A stretch of DNA of 64,000 nucleotides from Antechinus flavipes (Eukaryota): assembly GCF_016432865.1 (NCBI RefSeq), contig NC_067404.1:84630001-84694000 (forward strand), written 5' to 3'. Of the stretch, positions 11,423 through 38,726 are shown in pieces. The notes beneath the pieces were generated by a model that ran no database searches, was not told where the DNA came from, and saw only the letters and a list, made by a program, of their open reading frames with translations. Numbering within the stretch: the stretch's first letter is position 1; each line of letters opens with the position of its first letter. Made by a program: the position numbers and the translations under genes.

Positions 11423-11569
<147 letters not shown>

Positions 11570-11984
11570 TCATGAGGAGAGGAGATGAGTCATTCTCATG
11601 GATCGCTCACATTTGCGACAACATCAGAGGGAGCCGCATCTCAGGGAATATGGAAGCACAGGGAGTTCCTCAAAAGAGTTTCACAGCCTCACGTAACAGA
11701 ATTTCTAAAAGGGCCTCAAAGATCATCCGTCTAACTTAGCTCGCAGTGGAACAAGAATCCCGTTTATGCCTTTGTTGGTTGCATTTCCAGAGCGTCCCCC
11801 ACAACCTTCCTTCTCCCTCCCAAAGAGCCATCTCACAGAATAAAGACAAAAAGAAAAGAAGGGAAAAAACCGATCATATCCCACAGAAGCCTGTACCCTG
11901 CTTGAGGACCTCCCACCTCTGCATAATGCTGGGTAGAGGTCTCATTTCACAACTCTCCTCTCAGGCCAGAATTGTTCTTTGTCG

Positions 11985-12330
11985 TTTTGTATGTGCAGTT
12001 GTTCGAATGCCCTAGTACGCTTACCCAAAAAAGACTATTTTATGGCTAACTCACACAGGGCAAGTGTGTGGTGGTCAGAAAAAGTTATACAACGACAAAC
12101 ACGAGGATTTCAAGGTCTCTCTTAAGAATTTTGGAATTGATTTCATGACACGGGAGAGCCTGGCCCAGCGTAATATGCCCTCATCAAAGAAGACACCGTG
12201 CTCTATGAGCAAAGCGGAACTGAATTAGCTCCGAAGAAACGTGACATACACAAAATTCGCAAGTGCAAGTGTTCACACGGACTATTTATGCCTGACTTAT
12301 GCATTCCAAGCTCATATTCTCAATCAGCCA
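11985..12330 (+). mobile_element. RTE LINE 3' ORF fragment
   Basis: Degenerate translation VRMP..LPKRLFYG..TQGK..GGQKK..KVSLKNFGID..ALIKEDTVLYEQS, typical of the RTE C-terminus. Confidence 0.75.
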
Positions 12331-13948
12331 CCGTCAGACACACTGTAATTTGATTTTAAAATAAATTTTAAAAAAAACCTTGATTTTAAAATAAAATTTT
12401 TTAAAACTTGATTCTAAAATAAAATAGTGATGTCATTTTGGTCCTCTTTCAAAAGAAAGGACAACAACCGACCAACCAATGTTTTAGAGTTTATCAAACA
12501 CTAGGTTATTGAGTTTCATGATTTCTTATTCTCCCTTAGCTCATCTATTCCAATGATCTATTCTCTATTTTTAACCATACCAAATGCTTTTGATGTCTTC
12601 TGTTTTATAAAGTCTGAGGTCTTTCATTCCTACTTCCTTTCATTATTTCCCTCGATGTTCTTTTGTTTTTCCACATTATTTTTGTTCCTTTTTTATTATC
12701 AAGTTCAACGAGTCATCCCTTTGATAATTTTATAGGTATACCATTAAAACTGTACATCGACTCTGCTGGTGGTGTCATTTTCATGATATTGGCACAGCCC
12801 AGCCATGAGCACTGAATATTCCACCAGCTATTTAAATTACTCTCTCTCTTTTCAGGAAGTAGTTTCTATTTCAATCTATACCAGTACTTTGTGTATTTAT
12901 GTCCAACTATCTTTTGCATTTTACAGTTATTTGGAATGTCATTTCCTTTTCTATCATTGCTTCTTGCATTTTAAAACATAGTTGATTTTTGAGTGTTGAT
13001 CTTGAAACTGATGACTTGGTTGAAGCTATTTGTGTCTCAATTAGTATTTTGTTCATTCCTTAAGGAATGCTCATCCTGTGATTAGCAAATAGAGATTTTT
13101 AAAAATTTCCTATTTACCTATCTTTATACCTTTAACGGTTTTTCCTTATTACTATTCATTACATTTCTAGAAATGGATCAAATAATAGTGAGGAAAGTGG
13201 GTCTCCTTGCTTACTCTTATATCTCTTGAGAAAACTTCTAGTATATCTCTGTTGCATACGATCTTTAGTTTTGGTTTTAGATAGCTAATTTTCATGATAT
13301 TAAAAAGGTCCTTCTGTGCTTCCACTTTGTAGAGCTTTTAGCATAATAGAGGGTTAGACTTTTTCAGTGAAAAGGAACCCCCTACTTCTAAAGACAGTTC
13401 ACTTCACTTTTGAATTATAGTAATTATACAAATATATTCTCCAAATCAGTTAAGAAGGATTATATTGATTCTAAGTCTGCTATTTGATATTCTTTCAGAG
13501 TCTTCAATTGAATTTTCAAAATGTTCATCATGATTTAGCCTGCCATTTGAGGTTCTATTTGGAGTAATTTTAATGTTGTTGAATAACCAGGGCTTCTTTT
13601 CACAATTAATCAAGCAAAAAGCATTTCTTATTTACCATATGGCAGGAGCTATACAAAAGAAAGTAAAATTGGCATTCAAAATTGTTATTACTGCTGAATG
13701 TTTTAAAACCAAGATGGAGCACAGGAATGAGATAAGAAGGTAATCTAGAGAGAGAGGGATCTTGCGTCCTTTCTGGGACTATTCCAAGTCTGGGTTCCTA
13801 GCTGGCATTTAACAGAATCCTTGTTTCTCTCCTGCCCTTTCTGTCTTTACCCCCATTTCTTGCCGTAACCCCCTCTTCTCCTTCATACAAATCGGTTTGT
13901 CGGAGATGAGGTGATACCGCCCCGAATCTAGGATTTAATCCAGATTTA

Positions 13949-14158
<210 letters not shown>

Positions 14159-15060
14159 TCAAAGTCAGGAATAAGGGTTGAAAGAGTAATAGTGCAAGAG
14201 GAAAGAACTCCAGGGGAATGAGACCGCAAAATTCCCTCGGGCCTGAAACATTTCTCCTCCTTGGTACCTATCACCAACCCTCCAGTCCCATCTCCCTGCC
14301 CGATTGGGTTGGAAAACGAAGGATTATTGAGACATTTTCTGGGCCCATCCCAGTTCACTATGACCCAAGTTCTTCAGACCCAGAGGCCTCTGAGTAGTCT
14401 CAGACAAAAGGACACCAAGGAGCTGGCTTTCCATGTTCTGGGCAAGAGTGCTTAGACTCTCTGCTCCCCTGACACCATGAAAAATGCTGGCAGCCTCCCA
14501 GAGTAGCCAGGGCCTGGGTGAAAGCAAGATCATTTCCGGCAGGCCTTGCCTCATGTCAGCAAAGGGTAGCCGAGTCTCTCACCTCACCTCTCACTCATTC
14601 TAAAGCCACGTGTTAAAAGCTAGTCCCAATCCTCAGCTCAGAACAGAAGACAGAACTTCCCATAACCTAGTCCCATCCTGAGAAGGCAGATAGTAGAAGC
14701 CATCCAAATCGGAGCTTTGGTGAGCCCGCGTTAGCAATTGAACAAGGGGGCAAAGGATTTAGCAGCTCAAAGTAGCACAGAACTGCTTCACCAAGAACTC
14801 CAGATGGAGAAGGGCAGACGGTGATAGCCTGAGACGGTACTAAGAAGTGGAGGTTACAATGAGGATGAAGAGCAGGCTTTGGGGAAGACGTGGACTGATA
14901 CTAAAGCAATGTTGGAAGTCTGGAATGTGGAGCCGATGCATTTGTAGGTGATGATGAGATCTAGGGTCTGACCATCTTTGTGAGAGACTGAGGTGCCATC
15001 GAGAAGAAAGTCGTAGAAACGAGATTAAAAGCTGGGAAAAAAGCTTTACAGCCAGCGCCT

Positions 15061-15995
15061 CTCATAAAGGTCTCATTTCTAAGATGTATAAAGAATGGTA
15101 TCAAATGTATAAGAATCCAAGTCATTCCCCAATTGAGGAATGGTCAAAGAATATGAACGATTTTCAGATGATGAAATTAAACTATCTATAATTACATGAA
15201 AAAATGCTCGAAATCACTATTCATTAGAGAAATGTGAATTAAACAACTCTGAGGTACCACCGCATACTTCTCATATTGGCTGAGATGACAAGAAAAGATA
15301 ATGATAAATGTTGGAAGGGATGTGGGAAAATTGGGACACTGATGCATTGTTGGTGGAATTGTAAAATGATCCAACCATTCTGGAGAACAATCTGGAACTA
15401 TGCCCAAAGGGTTATCAAACTGTGCATGCCCTTTGACCCAGCAGTGCCATTACTGGGTCTGTATCCCAGGGAAATCCTAAAGGAGGGGAAAGGACCCACA
15501 TGTGCAAAGACGTTTGTAGCAGATCTTTTTTGTGGTGCCAAAGAATCGGAAACTGAGCGGATGCCCATCAGGTGGGGAACGGCTGAAGAAGCTGTGGTAC
15601 ATGAAGGCAATGGAATATTATTGTTCTATAAAAATGATGACCAAGCTGATTTCAGAAAAGCCTGGAAAGATTTAGATGAACTGATGCTGAAGGAAACAAG
15701 CAGAAGCAGGAATACGCTGTACGCAGTAACAGCAAGGTTGTGCCACGATCAACTATGAAAGACTCAATTCCTCTCAGGGGTTCAGTGATCCAAGGCAATC
15801 CCAATAGACTTGGGATAGAAAATGGCATCTGTGTCCAGAGAGAGAACTAAGGAGACTGAAGGTAAATCAAGACATGCTATGTTCACTTCCTTTTTCTGTT
15901 TTTTGTTTTTTAATGTCTTCTGTTGCTTTTCCTTTTTGCTCCGATTTTTCTCTCCCAATACGATTCATAAAGCAATATGTGTTCAAAATAAATAA
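15061..15995 (+). mobile_element. L1 3' fragment (end of ORF2 and 3' UTR)
   Basis: ORF 15276..15758 is the L1 ORF2 C-terminal Cys-rich region (CWKGCGKIGTLMHCWW), followed by an L1 3' UTR. Confidence 0.85.
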
Positions 15996-16540
15996 GCCTG
16001 CTAGAAAAAACGAAGTCAGTTATTGGTGTGGAGGAGCACGAGGCAGTTTAAGGAACATCAGTTGATCTTTGTGTAACTTTTAATTCTCCTACTTACCCTC
16101 CTCCAAACGCTTTCCCCTACATCCCTCTAAAAGACGGCCCTCATAACCAAGCGCCTGTTAGCAGGGAAGGTGGTCTTTCCCTGCCTGTGGAGGAATCTTG
16201 GTACCTAAATATTCCAGGTTATGAAAGAAACATAGTTTGTCCTCTATGATATCCATGAATATTCAGAATTTATCTCCCTCAAAATGCAGCCGTTGGCAAC
16301 TGGGTTCTGACCAAGGAAGCAGACTACTTCTAGCATGGTGCTAGGTGCTTAGAGATGGGCTGAGTGGGCCATCACCTGAACTTGAAACCAGATAAAATTC
16401 ACCCAGCTGTGCTGCTGTCCAGCATGGAAGTCACGCCAAATGCCCCTGAACTGATGCGAATGTATGCCCTCTCTGGAGAAGAGCAGGAGTCATTGAATGG
16501 CTCACCCAGAATCACAGCAATCATTTATTCATTTATTTGT

Positions 16541-16683
16541 TTGTTTTGCTGAGGCAATTGAGCTTAAGTGACTTGCCCAGGGTCACACAGAAAGTATTAA
16601 GTGTTTGAGGCCAGATTTTCAAATCTCAGGTCTTCCTGACTTCAGGGTTGGTGCTTTATCCACTTCACCAACTAGCTGCCCCC
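16541..16683 (-). mobile_element. WSINE1-type SINE
   Basis: gctgaggcaattgagcttaagtgacttgcccagggtcacacag...ccaactagctgccccc is the reverse complement of the SINE. Confidence 0.85.
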
Positions 16684-17342
16684 TCACAGCAATCATTTGC
16701 AATCATTTCTTACAAAACCAATCCCTCTGACATCTGGTCTCAGCTGGAAGACCTCCAAGGAAGGGGAACCTACCCGCACAGCTAGGGGGCGCCACAACAT
16801 CCAGAGCCCTGAGCCCGGAAGGCAGGAAGATCAGTTCAAACTTGGTTTCAGACACTTCCTAGCTGGGTGAGCCATGACAAATCATTTTACCTTTTCTTAC
16901 ATCAGGTCATTTAACCTTTTCCTGCATCTTACATCATCTATAAAATGGGGATAATAAGAGCACCTACCTCCCAAGATTGTGGTGAGCATAAGATAATACT
17001 GGTAAAAGCACTCCATAAACCTTAAAGCATTATAAAAACTGCTAGTTGTTACTACTACCACTACTTCTCCCAGTACTACCTCCACCACCCCTTTTCAACA
17101 CAGCCCTTTGCACTTGGGGCAGTTCTAATTGTTCAGCAATGAACTATTTTTAATTAAAGCTTTTTATTTTCAAAACACACTCATGGATAATTTTTCACCA
17201 TTGACGCTTGCAGAACCTTGTGTTCCAAATTTTCTCCCCTTCCTTCCACCCCCTCCCTTAAATGGCAAGTAATCCAATATATGTTAAACATGGTAAATAA
17301 ATAAATATATATGTATGTATACACACACACACACACACACAC

Positions 17343-17391
<49 letters not shown>

Positions 17392-17429
17392 TATTTGTAC
17401 AATTACGTCTGTCAATTAACTTGTCAGCA

Positions 17430-17640
17430 ATTAACGCAGCCCAAGATCACATTCTTTTTTGGCTCCCACACCCCATGCTGCCTTCCCTAGAGCTAGCAGT
17501 CCACTCAGATCCCAGAGCTTTTTCAGACAAGCTGCTGTGTAGCCCTGGCTCCCCCATCTTATCCTTGGGAAGTTGATTTTTTAGCCCAAGTGTAAAGCAT
17601 TACACTTATCCCTATTGAATATCATCTTATTATTTGAAAA
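17430..17640 (-). mobile_element. CR1/L3 fragment
   Basis: cccagagctttttcagacaagctgctg...cccccatcttatcc...cccaagtgtaaagcattacacttatccctattgaat. Confidence 0.6.
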
Positions 17641-18345
17641 ATCAGTTGACCATTTGGGATTTGATAAATAAATGTAGCACAGCTGGGCCACACTTGAGCC
17701 GTTAGTCCTTGTGGTTGCAGACCCGCCGTCTCTTTAGGGCTCGGTCCTTCAGCATTCGCTCAGGCGCCTGTGCACTGGCCGGTTCACAAAGAGATTTGGC
17801 CATACCACATTCCTTCAGCCAAACTTACACAGTGAGTAATATGAGTGCTCCTGTCTCCTGCGAGCAGAGCTAAGTCTGCCGGCCTCCCTGCAGATGTCTG
17901 GGCCAAGGGGCAGCTGGCACCCAATCGGGACTGCCGAGCCATCACAGAATAGACTTGAATGACTGAGGATGTTGGCCAGTGACCGGGACTAGCAGAGATC
18001 AGCACTGCGGAGGCGATCAAGATTCTGGAGAGGGGAAGGATGCGGGACACTGCACCCAGAGAGCAAGCTGAGGGCTGAGGCTGCCTGCTGTTTTGGCTCC
18101 CACCAGGACGAGGAACTAAGAAGAGGAAATGTTTTGTGTAACTTCACATGTGCCTTTTCAAGGAGGGGGATTAGAGAGGGAGGGAGGAAGTGAATTTGGA
18201 ACTCAAAGTTTTCAAAGCAAATGTCAAAAATTGTTTTTCATGTAACTGGGCAAAAAATAAAATATTCAATAATATAGAGAGCTAAGAAGAGGAGAATCAC
18301 TTCATTTCCCTGGTCTTAGTCTATGATCCTGAGAGGGATCCTGGA

Positions 18346-18390
<45 letters not shown>

Positions 18391-19193
18391 ATTTCTTTTC
18401 AGAAGCCAAAGATCAGGGATGTTAAGTGAAAGGAGATTTCCGAGATGACTGGAGGGGAATGGCTCCCAAGAGGAGTACATAACCCATTTCCTTTTTCTTT
18501 TTTGCTATGTTCAAAAAGCCCTGTAGCATACATAGTAGGGAGAATTGAGCCCCGGGAGAAGAGCGTACAGACCCCAGGGCCCTAGAACTGTTGATGGACT
18601 AGCCACCATGTTTTCATTTATTGAGTAATATTCTATTTGACCCTCTCCAGTAAATTCCAAATCTTCCCAGTGCCGGTATTGGAACGGTGGCCCTTGTGGG
18701 GATCTGTCTCATGGTAGACCGAATGCCCTCTTGTGACCAAAGGAGATGCTGCAGCTTATTCAGAAAGCTTTCCCAATTGTGCCTTAGAGAGGCTGAGGAG
18801 CTACCAGCCTGGGAGCTCCAATAGACACTCCGTTACTGGCCAATGAACACCATATTTGCCAGGTTTCTCAGGAAGAATAATAGCTAATATTTAGATAGCT
18901 CCTACTATGTGCTGAACTCTCGCTCGAACTGTTCCGATGCCCTCCCAACCATTCCCGCTCTGAAGCTGTATGGTGCTCTGGAGCCAGGCCAGCGGCCCGC
19001 CAGGCTTCAAGGCTCACTGACAAAGAGCTGGCATGGACCACGAAGTGATGGGTCAGGAAGGCACGGAGGGGTGGAAGTGCACATCGCAGTGGGGCTGGAG
19101 GCTGCAGTCACAGCAAGGAAATAAATCTCAGCTCCTGCCCTCCTGAAAAGCACACTCCAAGGAATCAGGGAATTTGTCTGAGAGGGAGATTAC

Positions 19194-19331
19194 CTTGAAG
19201 GTCACCACTTCCATGCCCAGTGCCCTTGAATAAAATGAGCTCGTTTCTTCAATACTCTTCACAGTCATCACCAGGTGGTCTAGTCCATGGACGAGACATG
19301 AGGGCAGCAGCTCACGGCAGCCACTTTTAGA
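19194..19331 (-). CDS. GLOD5: Glyoxalase domain-containing protein 5, exon 2
   Basis: ccttttcAG|...AAG|GTAATC; 138 nt encoding SKSGCRELLPSCLVHGLDHLVMTVKSIEETSSFYSRALGMEVVTFK, matching GLOD5 (LDHIVMTVKSI...LGMEVMTFK). Confidence 0.93.
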
Positions 19332-20989
19332 CTGAAAAGGAAGGATGTTCCATTTGTCTTTGATGGCTCCTCTCTCCTATTCCCACTCTCCCCACCTCCA
19401 ATTTTAGGGGAACATGTCTGAACGTTCTATATAGGGTCTTCTAACCATCTTGATTCTGAGGAGATAAATGATATCGTCCCTCCTGGGCTTCTTTTCTCTT
19501 TCTGACTAGCCTGGCTTTCTCTCAGTTCTTTCATTTCTCTCCTTCTTCCTTTCTGCCTTCTTTTATCACCTCTTCCCTACTCCCTACCTCTTGTCTGTCC
19601 CCCTCCATTTCAGTCTGCTGAGTGAGTAAAAATGCCAGGATAGAAACAGGGAATTGCCAGGATTCAAGGAAGGAGAGTGAGTGAAGGTCAAAGGGCTAAG
19701 TGCACAAGCTTGGGTGTGGCCAAGTTTTTATACACCCTCACTTCCTCCCCCTCCGCAGCATAGGGAATGTCAGAAACTCTTTAGAGGCAAAAGGTTATTT
19801 AAATGTCTGTCTTTTCCAGATCATTCCCTTCGCCAAGGCTGGTTCTGCTGTGCCTGGCTTGTGACCTTTCATTGAGAACAAGAGCAGTGTGGATCTTTCT
19901 CTTCTCCCCTGCTGCCGTCTTCCCTGGAGAGAGGAGTTTCAGTTTGGCTTCTTTCGGCCTTCTCTGGGCAATGACCTTTCTTCCAGCCAAGATGACCCAG
20001 GAGTAGCCCTGCCCAGTGCTGGCTCTGCCTCTGGCCAGTCCAGCCTCTTCCTGGAGGGGCTGGAGTCCACAGGTAGGAGGAGGAGCCTTTTGTACCCTTG
20101 ACTTCTCACTCCCATTCCTTTCAGGGAGCAGGATCTCTGCATGGATTCCCCTTTGGCTCCACTAGAGACTAGCTCAGCCAAGTCAGTCCCAGAGGTCAGA
20201 ATCAAGGTGGGGAAGAGTCTCAGGTGACCAGCTCTCACCTCCTTTTTCTGCCAGATGCAGAAGAGCTATGTGTATATCAAGTATACACAGATTGGTCTCT
20301 GCTTATAGTTCCTTCTTCTGATCTCAATTAATCCAAGATACCACTAAATTGGAAGCATGTTTCTGAAGCCCTGAGTTGGTGGGAGTTTGATTTCAAGTCT
20401 GGGAAGGAGACAGAGGAGTTCTAAGGTACAGAAAATCACTAGCCCCAACCCTAACCTGCAGTCAACTTCTGGAAGAACATGAAGAAAAGTTGCCCAGAAT
20501 ATATTCCCATCTCTGCTGTTGGAGGGTATACTCAAATAGTTGAGAACACAGATCCGGGAGATTACTTGAATATTATGAATGAACAACCCATTTTCATTGT
20601 TCAGGAGGAGGAGACTGGTGGTGGAGCTAATGACTTCTAAGGTCTCTCCCACTCCACATCTGCCATCAGCTGATAGTGTTATAAGAAGAGACCCAATTGT
20701 CTGACCAAAGGTAGTTACTTCATAAGGAAAGGATGTGGAACTTGCAACACTTGGACACTGATTGTATTTGAAGGGGGAAGAAGAAGGAAGAACCAAGAGT
20801 CCCCTGAGGTTGTAAACCTGAGGCAGTGGAAATATTGGTGGTTGTTAGATTTCAAAAAGTTCCCCCAAATGCATAGAAACTCTAAAAGATAGAAACGTTT
20901 AAAATGCACACAAAATCCCCATTTGTGAATATGTGACTGATCACATAGAGGAGAATGGTTTCAGTGAGGGAAACAGTGGTGGTATTAAT

Positions 20990-25918: not shown

Positions 25919-26264
25919 AGGTTGGGGTTATGGAGATGCAGAAAGTGAGGATCTCTGAGGGGAAGGACACGGGTAATGATGCAGGAGAGAAAGCAGCCCA
26001 GGTCATCTGTCTATTGCTTTGTTGGGAAGTATTTCCCCAGTAGCAAATCTGAATGGCTTCTTCCCAACCTTCTCCACCATCCACCTCGCTCCTAGTTCAA
26101 TTCACCTTTTACGTGACAGCTCTCATCCCCTCCCAAAGCCTTCCCTTCTCCGGGTTAAGCATCTGCATTTCCTTCAACTGACCTAAGTTTGGCAGCAACT
26201 CTTGTTTGCCTGGACTCTTGCAGTGGCTGACCCTAATTCTAATCCAGCCCCCACTCAGCTGACA

Positions 26265-26590: not shown

Positions 26591-27970
26591 AAGGGCCCTG
26601 GTTCTTGGGATCTGGAAACTTGTTTGTTTGCTTTTTTTCTTCCCCATTTCAATAAAATCCATTTTTTATTAAATAATTGATTAAAAGGACAGGTTTCAGA
26701 GAGATGTGAAAAAGACAAATTCTTCAAGATAATGCTTTTCTGGCATCCTCTTTCACCAATTGCTTCCCTCAAATCTCTGAGAAGGGGAAAACTGAAACAT
26801 CGCCAGCAATGAGTCTTTTTTTAAAAATAAAAATGGACTTCCTAGCTGTGTGACCCCGGACAAGTCACTTAACCCCAATTGCTCCCGCAAAAAATAAATA
26901 AATGAATGAATGAATAAATAAAAATGGAAAAGTGGTGAACCATCTTGAGTGCTGCCTGCCTTAGGAGATGTACTGGGACATGGTAGTCCCCCTCAAGCTG
27001 TATCTGGGGGACTTCTATAACGTGCCCAGATAAGTGACGATCCAACTTGAGCCACAGTGGCCCCTCTAATCCCTAGCCTCCTGAGAGCTCAGCTGGCCAT
27101 AAAGCATCATTAGGAGGCAGACACTCTGTGCTAGGGCTATTCCTTTCCCCTCTGGTGTGATGGTTAACTTCAAGTTAAGTCAACAAGGATTTATCCTGCA
27201 CTCTCAGAGGCCAGATCCCAAGCTAAGGTAAAACTAGTCCCAGCTCTCAAGAAGTTTACAACTGAACTTGTCCTGAAGCAATTATCGAGAGAACAGTTGC
27301 TGTTAAGAGGTCGGGAGGAACGGGCGGAAAAGCTGAATTGACATTCTCTCCGTTTCTCCTTCCACACCCCAAATCATTCTAATTCCAGGACGTCTGGTGC
27401 ACTCCCCGGCCCAGACAATGGGAAACACGTGCACCCCTCTCATTGCCTTTTTAATCCCCAGATCCCAGGATTGATTTATTCTGAGCCTGCAGCCACTAAA
27501 TCTCCCCAGAATTAGTCACGGGAATTCTCCTCCAGCCAGCCCTCCCCTATTCTGTACTTCTCACCTGTTGGGGCTCTTCTGACTGCTGAGTCAGCCAGCC
27601 ATTCTATCGAGTTTTCAGCTCTTCTCATCTTTGGATGATGACCCCGGGAAAACAGCTGCCAATTTCTCCATTCTTCAGGCCCATCCCCTCCCTCAGTTAC
27701 CTCCTCGAATACTTTCCTTCTATCCCCAGCGTCGGCTTCTGGAATTCCTTCTTTTCCTCCATGTGCCTGGCCCTCTCAGCCCTCCTCAGTCCCTTTGGTT
27801 CCGAAGTCACAAAAGCTCCTCCAACCTCTTCCTCGTAAGGCTTTTATTTCCACAGCTGAATATCTCTCTGACTCTCTCCTTTTCCCCCCACCGCTATCCC
27901 TACCACCATCATCACATACACACACAAACACATATTCAGGGCCTTGTCGAGCTCCACGTTCTTATCCTCT

Positions 27971-28351
27971 TCAGTGCTTCTCAGGAATCCAGGACAGGGA
28001 GTGCTGACAGGGAATCCAGGTCTCCAGGTTGTTTGGGGCTGGGGCATAGACTGGGGGTGGGGGTGGGAATTGGAATGGCTGTGGCAGTGGGAATTGGAGT
28101 GGGGGTGGGGGTGGGAATTGGAGTGGCTGTGGCCATGGGTCTGGGAAGAGACTCTCCTTAGAAAACAGGTTGGGGTTATGGAGATGCAGAAAGTGAGGAT
28201 CTCTGAGCTCAGAATTTGGGAAGAAATTGGGTCGGGCTATTTGGGGTTCAGGAAGGAAGCTGGTCAGGTTGTCAAAAGGCAACAGGTTCAGGTCCGGGAG
28301 CAGTGAACACTTCTGCTTCCTCTGCTTGGCCCGGCGGTTCTGGAACCATAT
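27971..28351 (-). CDS. PROP1-like: Homeobox gene exon 3 (recognition helix IWFQNRR and Pro-rich C-terminus)
   Basis: Acceptor tatctttcttatcctAG|ATATGGTTCCAGAACCGCCGG; 381 nt open frame to TGA. The distal part equals ORF 27971..28282. Confidence 0.92.
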
Positions 28352-29311
28352 CTAGGATAAGAAAGATACTGTTCCCTTGCCCCCACGGTCCCAAAGGGTG
28401 AGCCTAAACCTCCAGTTATTGGGAACATAACCATCAGGGTCCCAGAAAGTGAGAACATTCCCTGCAGGGGCAAGACACGATCTCCTTCCCTCCCTCCCAG
28501 GATTGACACAACCAAGGACCCTCCTCTCAAATTCAAGGGACTGCCTGGGAATGAGAACTCTAGCAGGGCTGTCACCTGAACACGGATCTCATCGAGCCCT
28601 AGGTCTCGGGCCAGAGCTTCCCGAAACCAGACATCAGGGTACTGGTTTCTTTCAAAGACTTCCTCAAGCTTTTCCAGTTGTTTGGAAGTAAACTTGGTCC
28701 GATGTCTCTTCGGCTTCCCGGCTGGGAGGGGAGCTGATCCTGGAGGGGCTTCCTCCCGGGGGGGAACATATCCTAGAGAGTTCAGGCCAAACACTTCCAG
28801 GGCCTGGCCGAAAAGTCCAGCACCTCCTGCTTCTGAGGGAAGAACAATTGAGGCTCCATCATACGTGGCTCAGCCCCACCCCAAGTCATTTCCAGCCCAA
28901 GTCAAATATAGCATGGCCATGGCTCCCATATACAGTTCAGACCCCCTTTTATAGCTCAGGTCAAATATCTAAGACCTTGGGCCCATACACAACCCAGACC
29001 CCTGAGAAATAGCCTGATTCACATAGTAGGCTCTTCAGAATTGGTTGTTTTAGTAGTAAATCCCAACCAGAGGAAATCCAGTTCCCTCCCTGGAGAGAGC
29101 TGCAGCCCTCTCCCGGTTCCTCTTGCCCCCTTCCTCAGACTCCTGAGAGTCTAGGGAAGCTGAGCTCATGGGAAACCTATGACCCCAGTCCCTGGAGCCT
29201 GACTAAGCCCCTAACTAATTAGTCCAAGTCCTTGGGAGGAAAGAAGGGCCAGGGAAAAGTCACCATCCCTCCCACCGCCCCCCAGGGACCCAGGAGTCCA
29301 GGCTCACCCAT
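27971..29311 (-). CDS. PROP1-like: PROP1-like paired-class (Q50) homeobox gene, 3 coding exons: 29308-29311, 28576-28832, 27971-28351 (642 nt, 213 aa)
   Basis: Spliced translation: [87 protein letters not shown]|[35 protein letters not shown]...WIPEKH*. All introns are GT-AG and in frame, with the phase-0 intron between homeodomain codons 46/47 typical of the PRD class. [25 protein letters not shown] and the downstream SLL...SFLPE motif match PROP1 as recalled. Kozak ACCATGG at 29311; AATAAA (minus) at 27843-27848. Confidence 0.9.
28576..28832 (-). CDS. PROP1-like: Homeobox gene exon 2 (N-terminal region and homeodomain residues 1-46)
   Basis: Acceptor ttgttcttccctcAG|AA and donor CAG|GTGACA; 257 nt = 2+85 codons. 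An alternative in-frame acceptor ctctctAG| would start the exon at 28772. Contained in ORF 28288..28794. Confidence 0.88.
29308..29311 (-). CDS. PROP1-like: Homeobox gene exon 1 coding part (ATG G only)
   Basis: ctaccATGG|GTGAGC: strong Kozak context and consensus donor. Phase 1 matches the exon 2 acceptor and gives M-E-A. Confidence 0.65.
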
Positions 29312-37775: not shown

Positions 37776-38726
37776 ATGGATGAAAGCAATCAAAGCCGCC
37801 TCTTTGAATTCGTCCTCCAGGGCTTCTCGGAGCAATCACCCCCTCAGTGGGTCTTGTTTTTGCTCTTCTTCTGGCTGTATGTGGTCGCTGTGATCGGCAA
37901 CTTGCTCATCTCCACGGCCATCCTGCTCGACGCCCACCTGCACAAGCCCATGTATTTCTTCCTCGCCCAGCTCTCCCTGGCCGACGGCTGCTTCGTCTCC
38001 ACCACGGTGCCCAATCTGCTGGCGAGCATCGGAACTCGCGACAGAAGCATCTCGTACCCCAGCTGCATGACCCAGCTCTACTTCTTCCTAACTTTCGGCG
38101 ACCTAGACATCTTCCTCCTGGCCGTGATGGCCTACGATCGCTACGTGGCCATCTGCCACCCACTCCACTATACCACGGTCCTGAGCCCCACCCGCTGCGC
38201 CTCGCTGGTGGCCCTCTGCTGGGTGCTCACCAGCTCGGTGGCCCTCACTCACACTCTGCTCATGAGCCGGCTCTCTTTCTGTACCACAAAAACCGTCCCG
38301 GGCTTTTTCTGTGACCTGGGCCCATTGATGCAGGTGGCCTGCTCCAGCACACAGGTGAACATGTGGGTGCTGCTCACCCTGGGGGGAGCCGTCATCCTCC
38401 TCCCCTTCACCCTCGTTCTGATCTCTTACGGCCACATCGCCAGGGCCATCTTCAGGACTCCGTCGGCCCAGGGGAGGCGCAAGGCCTTCTCCACCTGCGG
38501 CTCTCACCTCACCATGGTCTTCCTCTTCTTTGGGACAGTGATCCGGGCATACCTATGCCCCGGCAGTCCCGGATCGGCCGCCCCGGGGGACACGGCGGCC
38601 ATTGTCATGTACACAGTCATCACACCCACAATGAATCCCTTCATCTACAGTCTGAGGAACCGGGACATGCAAGCAGCCCTGGCCAGGCTTATCGGAGGGA
38701 ACATCCCGAGGAGAATAGCCAAGTAG
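37776..38726 (+). CDS. Olfactory receptor, family 1-like (class II), intact single-exon ORF, 316 aa
   Basis: ATG at 37776 (MDESNQS, N-glycosylation sequon). OR motifs LHKPMYFFL, SYPSCMTQLYFF, MAYDRYVAICHPLHY, FFCD, KAFSTCGSHL and NPFIYSLRN are present; no stops or frameshifts. Subfamily not determined. Confidence 0.96.
   Translation: MDESNQSRLFEFVLQGFSEQSPPQWVLFLLFFWLYVVAVIGNLLISTAILLDAHLHKPMYFFLAQLSLADGCFVSTTVPNLLASIGTRDRSISYPSCMTQLYFFLTFGDLDIFLLAVMAYDRYVAICHPLHYTTVLSPTRCASLVALCWVLTSSVALTHTLLMSRLSFCTTKTVPGFFCDLGPLMQVACSSTQVNMWVLLTLGGAVILLPFTLVLISYGHIARAIFRTPSAQGRRKAFSTCGSHLTMVFLFFGTVIRAYLCPGSPGSAAPGDTAAIVMYTVITPTMNPFIYSLRNRDMQAALARLIGGNIPRRIAK

Follow-up and report, generated by a model that had tools for sequence, protein, structure and literature searches.

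A probable X-linked PROP1 orthologue with a fast-evolving homeodomain in Antechinus flavipes

Introduction

The eutherian PROP1 protein acts as a cooperative dimer on palindromic TAAT (P3/PRDQ9) sites. Expressed in progenitors of Rathke's pouch, it promotes the POU1F1 lineage of the embryonic pituitary, and without it both humans and mice develop combined pituitary hormone deficiency. It is regarded as a master regulator of the pituitary, and its homeodomain is nearly invariant among eutherians. On P3 sites, few paired-like homeodomains are as cooperative as that of PROP1; cooperativity depends critically on positions 42, 43, 44 and 46, with a contribution from R2, and the A43V replacement in ALX4 and ARX lowers it several-fold with monomer affinity unchanged, while residues 19 and 30 form a packing contact between helices 1 and 2 (PMC13530268). 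Rapid change of PRD-class homeodomains is known from the ETCHbox, Rhox and DUX genes, which are duplicates whose parent genes persist (PMC8208926).

The gene considered here lies on the minus strand of the 64-kb stretch of A. flavipes DNA that we analysed (the window). Like eutherian PROP1 (5q35.3 in humans), it has a paired-like Q50 homeodomain with no paired box or OAR domain and three coding exons, the first intron being in phase 1 and the second one separating homeodomain codons 46 and 47. Furthermore, the two have in common a set of motifs (18 residues), as well as SLL and FLPE downstream of the homeodomain, and they are sisters in the gene tree. Different from eutherian PROP1, however, the antechinus protein has a short, unalignable N terminus and a homeodomain that is identical at only 41 of 60 positions, the coding part of exon 1 measures 4 nt instead of 109 nt, a dasyurid-specific 24-nt repeat is present, and the SWN end is replaced. 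Moreover, the antechinus gene is X-linked beside GLOD5, whereas the eutherian one is autosomal, and the dN/dS of the homeodomain is 5 to 10 times higher in dasyurids than in eutherian PROP1.

The other marsupial PROP1 proteins (Monodelphis A0A5F8G6Q2, Petaurus XP_068964203.1, Sarcophilus XP_031800609.1 and Sminthopsis XP_074133740.1) fall in the same clade (support, 100/100) and share its C-terminal motifs, and the order olfactory receptor-PROP1-glyoxalase gene is the same in Petaurus and Sminthopsis as in antechinus. Compared with the catarrhine homeodomain, those of Monodelphis (49/60 identical) and Petaurus (42/54) are nearer to the standard than those of dasyurids. In particular, both retain Ala43 and Thr38, and Monodelphis also retains Thr7 (the Petaurus model is truncated before position 7), whereas dasyurids add T7K, A19V, A30F, T38L, A43I and I45V. 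With ETCHbox, Rhox and DUX the gene shares a PRD-class homeodomain and rapid amino acid change, and with Rhox its X-linkage; unlike them, it has no parent copy among annotated proteins and is probably orthologous, by position and phylogeny, to a conserved developmental gene.

Gene structure and annotation status

Read directly from the window, the PROP1 gene comprises three exons on the minus strand (27971 to 29311), with a coding sequence (CDS) of 642 nt that encodes 213 amino acids; all features of the gene given below are on this strand. The coding part of exon 1 (29308 to 29311) consists of the start codon, an ATG at 29311, and of the first base of codon 2 (ATG G), in the Kozak context ACCATGG and with the phase-1 donor G/GTGAGC. 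At the position where Sarcophilus and Sminthopsis use an upstream in-frame ATG, Antechinus has AAG. Intron 1 (28833 to 29307; 475 nt, GT..AG) is followed by exon 2 (28576 to 28832; 257 nt), which extends from the acceptor CCCTCAG/ to the donor CAG/GTGACA and encodes the N-terminal region and homeodomain residues 1 to 46 (28576 to 28713). Intron 2 (28352 to 28575; 224 nt, GT..AG) interrupts the homeodomain after codon 46, the position at which eutherian PROP1 has an intron too, and the coding part of exon 3 (27971 to 28351), which begins after the acceptor TCCTAG/, encodes homeodomain residues 47 to 60 (28310 to 28351) and a proline-rich C-terminal region up to the TGA stop (27971 to 27973). 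The first AATAAA past the stop, a polyadenylation signal, is found 123 nt beyond it (27843 to 27848). An in-frame 24-nt tandem repeat of 3.2 copies (28057 to 28132) encodes a PLQFPPPP-type repeat, which is present in the dasyurid proteins and absent from Monodelphis and Petaurus PROP1.

The position of the second intron is also apparent from the Pfam matches: the Homeodomain profile matches exon 2 over its positions 1 to 45 (E = 3.5e-13), and the remaining 12 positions match the start of exon 3, so that the intron falls between homeodomain codons 46 and 47. This intron and the phase-1 first intron are the same in Sarcophilus, Sminthopsis, mouse and mole PROP1, and the annotation of the Sarcophilus and Sminthopsis loci shows three matching exons. 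No second homeobox was found within the 64-kb window.

The first-pass annotation had proposed a 213-aa gene model with a Kozak start, GT-AG introns, the 46/47 intron and a polyadenylation signal, and our reading of the minus strand reproduces it exactly. That annotation had also described the gene as easy to miss and potentially novel, while taking existing annotation as an argument against novelty. Both claims fail, since RefSeq already contains this very model for A. flavipes: the 213-aa translation corresponds residue for residue to XP_051824374.1 (A. flavipes "prophet of Pit-1-like isoform X2"), and the window is 100% identical to A. flavipes CM028223.1 over all shared bases. Furthermore, the UniRef cluster of the Sarcophilus protein includes two Antechinus flavipes RefSeq proteins, and the orthologues in Sarcophilus, Sminthopsis, Petaurus and Monodelphis are already named PROP1 or PROP1-like. 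The PROP1 gene described here is real, intact and catalogued before, and it is not a new gene; ordinary as a gene, it is moderately interesting as an evolutionary case. Our literature search found no paper on the divergence of marsupial PROP1, and the PRD-class survey that it returned does not mention PROP1.

In RefSeq isoform X1, the first exon is a different one with 109 coding nt, located about 21.8 kb past the window end, and hence not within the 64-kb window, and 57 kb upstream of the stop. It lies between the window and a region with a further olfactory receptor gene, and it is joined by splicing to the exon 2 that isoform X2 also has. Both its length of 109 nt and its phase 1 match exon 1 of eutherian PROP1, the encoded peptide being unrelated. 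As regards transcript data, 5 to 16% of the sampled words were present in the RNA runs, with about 13 of 82 in the gene body versus about 16 of 140 in the flanks; their distribution was patchy, with no clear enrichment in the gene body.

Family membership and phylogeny

The homeodomain is of the paired-like type with Gln50, and Homeodomain is the only domain that Pfam finds in both coding pieces, with neither a paired box nor an OAR domain. The residues that contact bases and the minor groove or that form the hydrophobic core (R3, R5, F20, W48, F49, Q50, N51 and R53) are kept. Outside the homeodomain, SLL, FLPE and a W-x-P/S-x-x-H block are retained, while the C-terminal SWN end, kept in Monodelphis, is replaced by SWIPEKH in dasyurids.

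A word-indexed protein search, whose sensitivity is limited, recovered only two dasyurid proteins, both of 216 aa and 92% identical over exon 2, namely, the Sminthopsis "prophet of Pit-1-like" and the Sarcophilus "CHOX-7-like" protein (the latter named "Homeobox protein prophet of Pit-1" in UniRef). An exhaustive HMMER search that took the Sarcophilus protein as the query gave only PROP1 proteins as the best single-homeodomain matches (Petaurus, 143.7 bits; sheep, 101; golden mole, 83.8; platypus, 83.6), once the higher-ranked multi-homeodomain proteins with summed scores had been set aside; the next families after PROP1 were Rx, unc-42-like and OTP. The reciprocal search with eutherian PROP1 recovered PROP1 from many eutherians, platypus (165 bits), reptiles, fishes and sharks, and, among its best 120 matches (down to 99 bits), one protein per marsupial, i.e., Monodelphis (118 bits), Petaurus (106 bits) and Sminthopsis (103 bits). 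No conventional or second marsupial PROP1 occurs among these best 120 matches in annotated proteins.

The maximum-likelihood tree, with OTP and Rx as outgroups, places the gene in the vertebrate PROP1 clade at the position expected from the species tree. Within it, marsupial and eutherian PROP1 form sister groups and platypus falls outside the therians; support values are 99/99 for mammals, 95/83 for therians, 100/100 for marsupials and 98/91 for eutherians. In addition, Monodelphis PROP1 bridges the gap between dasyurid and eutherian sequences, as it combines a homeodomain close to the catarrhine one (49/60) with the C-terminal motifs of the dasyurid proteins and with the SWN end.

These results bear directly on the possibility that the gene is a marsupial- or dasyurid-specific PROP1 paralogue with a new role, for instance, in the germline or early embryo like the ETCHbox and Rhox genes, the true PROP1 being elsewhere or lost. 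A paralogue of this kind would agree with the high dN/dS, with the alternative first exon of isoform X1 57 kb upstream and with the dasyurid proteins' lack of the conserved C-terminal end. However, the gene tree agrees with the species tree, the sequence gap is closed by Monodelphis PROP1, which retains SWN, and the search that detected platypus PROP1 at 165 bits and the marsupial proteins at 103 to 118 bits returned no second marsupial PROP1 among its best 120 matches.

Chromosomal location and neighbouring genes

PROP1 is located on the A. flavipes X chromosome, as CM028223.1 measures 86,570,782 bp and the X, which is chromosome 7 and corresponds to the devil X, measures about 86.5 Mb in the genome paper (PMC9290055). 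Its upstream neighbour is an intact olfactory receptor gene (37776 to 38726, plus strand), divergent from PROP1 and 96% identical to its counterpart at this site in Sarcophilus. Another olfactory receptor is present in the A. flavipes locus beyond the window end. The downstream neighbour is GLOD5 (11426 to 19376, minus strand), with exon-bearing frames at 19131 to 19376, 13949 to 14158 and 11426 to 11569, the middle one of which matches human GLOD5 (3ZW5) with E = 2.9e-24. GLO1 was considered for this downstream gene and discarded after a negative motif search.

An olfactory receptor upstream of PROP1 and a glyoxalase-domain gene downstream of it are common to Sminthopsis, Petaurus and Antechinus; in the Sarcophilus locus, the olfactory receptor alone is visible within the 10-kb flank. 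In platypus, an olfactory receptor lies 2 kb upstream of PROP1, and about 7 kb downstream there is a 151-aa RRM gene that scores higher with human RBM3 (111 bits) than with CIRBP (84 bits). Similarly, in the gecko Paroedura the gene about 7 kb downstream of PROP1 is RBM3-like (62 versus 49 bits). The gene upstream of gecko PROP1 is c-type lysozyme-like and contains the motif DGSSEYGIFQ, which resembles SPACA5, another Xp11.23 gene. Neither RBM3 nor GLOD5 was found within 10 kb of mouse and mole PROP1. An olfactory receptor fragment is located upstream of PROP1 in Mus pahari, and the receptors beside PROP1 in Antechinus, platypus and mouse are 52 to 54% identical, a value too low to prove that the receptor and PROP1 moved as a shared block.

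Human RBM3, GLOD5, ARAF and SYN1 map to Xp11.23-p11.3 and human PROP1 to 5q35.3; the marsupial neighbourhood of PROP1 corresponds to human Xp11.23. Because PROP1 adjoins RBM3 in both platypus and gecko, a block of the Xp11.23 type is probably the ancestral amniote site of PROP1, and the eutherian gene at 5q35.3 probably moved there in the eutherian stem. In marsupials, PROP1 would have stayed in the block, which is X-linked in this lineage; such a history would make PROP1 a clear example of departure from the proto-X in one of two therian lineages and persistence there in the other.

With regard to the putative paralogue, X-linkage and the lack of synteny with eutherian 5q35.3 would be in its favour; against it, Diprotodontia and Dasyuromorphia have the gene at the same locus, and PROP1 of platypus and gecko also adjoins an Xp11.23-type gene, RBM3. 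We regard a paralogue with a new role as very improbable. The first-pass annotation had left the choice between a lineage-specific duplicate of the ETCHbox kind and a marsupial PROP1 orthologue under accelerated evolution. The former loses ground, since no second PROP1 appears among annotated marsupial proteins and the locus is common to marsupials and compatible with those of platypus and gecko, while the latter is backed by the gene tree, synteny, relative-rate tests and dN/dS. We conclude, with a probability of roughly 85%, that the gene is the marsupial PROP1 orthologue, X-linked and fast evolving, with extra change in dasyurids and with its frame and splice sites maintained.

A further point concerns the first coding exon annotated for the Sminthopsis glyoxalase gene, 273 nt past the PROP1 stop. 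As a conserved coding exon it was rejected, because the equivalent region of the window (27400 to 27700, minus strand) contains two stops; an erroneous annotation or an untranslated leader probably accounts for it, and GLOD5 transcripts may start directly behind PROP1.

Rate of evolution

The homeodomain encoded in the window is identical to that of catarrhine PROP1 at 41 of 60 positions, i.e., with the 19 differences from human PROP1 counted in the first-pass annotation, and to those of platypus and elephant shark at 39 and 34 positions, respectively; platypus and catarrhine agree at 52 of 60. In Tajima relative-rate tests with platypus or gecko as the outgroup, dasyurid homeodomains showed 9 to 15 unique changes versus 0 to 2 in eutherians (p, 0.0002 to 0.02; 12 to 15 changes going with p of 0.0002 to 0.007), and those of Monodelphis and Petaurus 3 to 8 versus 0 to 2, mostly without significance. 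Stem branch lengths are 0.93 for marsupials, 0.54 for dasyurids and 0.26 for eutherians, and the path from the therian node measures about 1.56 to the window gene versus about 0.3 to 0.5 to most eutherians. Over the time since the therian ancestor, marsupial PROP1 has evolved three to four times faster than eutherian PROP1, with another burst along the stem of the dasyurids. Of the observations that were to deprive the gene of novelty, prior annotation is confirmed, but a similar divergence of all marsupial orthologues is not, as dasyurids carry the extra burst.

Among Antechinus, Sarcophilus and Sminthopsis, dN/dS is 0.61 to 0.79 overall, 0.35 to 0.73 in the homeodomain and 0.65 to 1.6 in the C-terminal part, compared with 0.27 overall and 0.07 in the homeodomain between mouse and mole PROP1. 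The homeodomain differs at 4 to 8 positions among the three dasyurids, and their divergence in the CDS (5.5 to 9.8%) is about that of the introns (5.4 to 9.9%). By a rough binomial test on counts, omega for the three dasyurids does not fall significantly below 1; it follows that the case for constraint rests on the integrity of the frame and on the deeper conservation across marsupials.

Among eutherians, shrew PROP1 (Suncus and Sorex) is 49 to 51% identical to mole PROP1, compared with 65 to 80% for the other eutherians, and Sorex PROP1 has a branch of 0.67 and eight homeodomain changes from the catarrhine sequence. The divergence of the shrews indicates that fast evolution of PROP1 is not limited to marsupials.

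Frame integrity and constraint

On the three-species tree, no frame-breaking indel has occurred in the CDS, versus 5.7 expected at intron rates (P = 0.0035), and the two indels that are present among the three dasyurids are each of a single codon. Likewise, no premature stop has arisen from about 75 substitutions (P about 0.066), and the joint probability of an open frame under neutrality is about 2e-4. All four splice sites are identical in Antechinus, Sarcophilus and Sminthopsis, and the marks of a pseudogene (frame disruption and lost splice sites) are absent in these three dasyurids. By these comparisons, dasyurid PROP1 evolves close to the neutral rate, under weak constraint and with its frame preserved. 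It may still act as a DNA-binding pituitary factor. A pituitary master regulator, nearly invariant in eutherians in its homeodomain, is thus X-linked and close to neutral in its evolution in dasyurids. That the gene is instead drifting to loss, open by chance and non-functional in dasyurids, would fit the equal divergence of CDS and introns, the omega of 0.6 to 0.8 that is not significantly below 1, the 4 to 8 homeodomain differences and the absence of the upstream ATG in Antechinus, but we consider it very improbable in view of three lineages with no stop or frameshift, of the four identical splice sites, of the retained R3, R5, F20, W48, F49, Q50, N51 and R53 and of C-terminal motifs common to Monodelphis and Petaurus and thus kept across the marsupial radiation.

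Dimer interface

Within the orthologue reading, some of the dasyurid replacements fall at positions with a known role in dimerization. A43I occurs in all four dasyurids, whereas all other PROP1 sequences in the comparison have Ala43, those of the other marsupials as well as those ranging from shark to human. R2K is present in two of the four dasyurids, Antechinus and Sarcophilus, and positions 19 and 30, occupied by small residues in other PROP1 proteins, are Val and Phe in dasyurids. On the other hand, R3, P26, E42, R44 and Q46 are retained in dasyurid PROP1. Changes of residue 43 weaken cooperative DNA binding in ALX4, ARX and PHOX2B, and dasyurid PROP1 is substituted at this very residue. 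We infer that dasyurid PROP1 may have kept its binding to DNA as a monomer, while A43I, together with R2K in the two species that carry it, would weaken cooperative binding to P3 sites.

One could go further and imagine a course of events in which PROP1 was ancestrally part of the proto-X block, the eutherian gene escaped to an autosome and remained strongly constrained, the marsupial gene remained on the X with a less constrained homeodomain, and A43I, R2K and the helix-packing pair A19V/A30F in dasyurids reduced or abolished cooperative binding to P3 sites. We advance this sequence of steps tentatively, with the odds somewhat against it as a whole. If it were true, pituitary lineage specification in dasyurids would run on a biochemically altered PROP1. 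The dasyurid gene provides a natural test of how far a developmental homeodomain tolerates an altered chemistry of its dimer interface.

Other features of the window

An exact 41-nt copy of part of exon 3 (28167 to 28207) is found 2.2 kb downstream, at 25919 to 25959, in the same orientation. It sits exactly at the point where the alignment with Sarcophilus and Sminthopsis breaks, Sarcophilus having about 1.5 kb there instead, and it resembles templated filler at the junction of a deletion.

Finally, copies of a repeated element occur at about 15.0 to 15.7, 32.9 to 33.4, 40.0 to 40.7, 43.0, 45.6 to 46.0, 49.2 to 49.7, 54.0 to 56.1 and 58.4 to 63.1 kb of the window. They are 70 to 90% identical to one another and to pieces of the Sarcophilus and Sminthopsis loci, and are probably LINE fragments.
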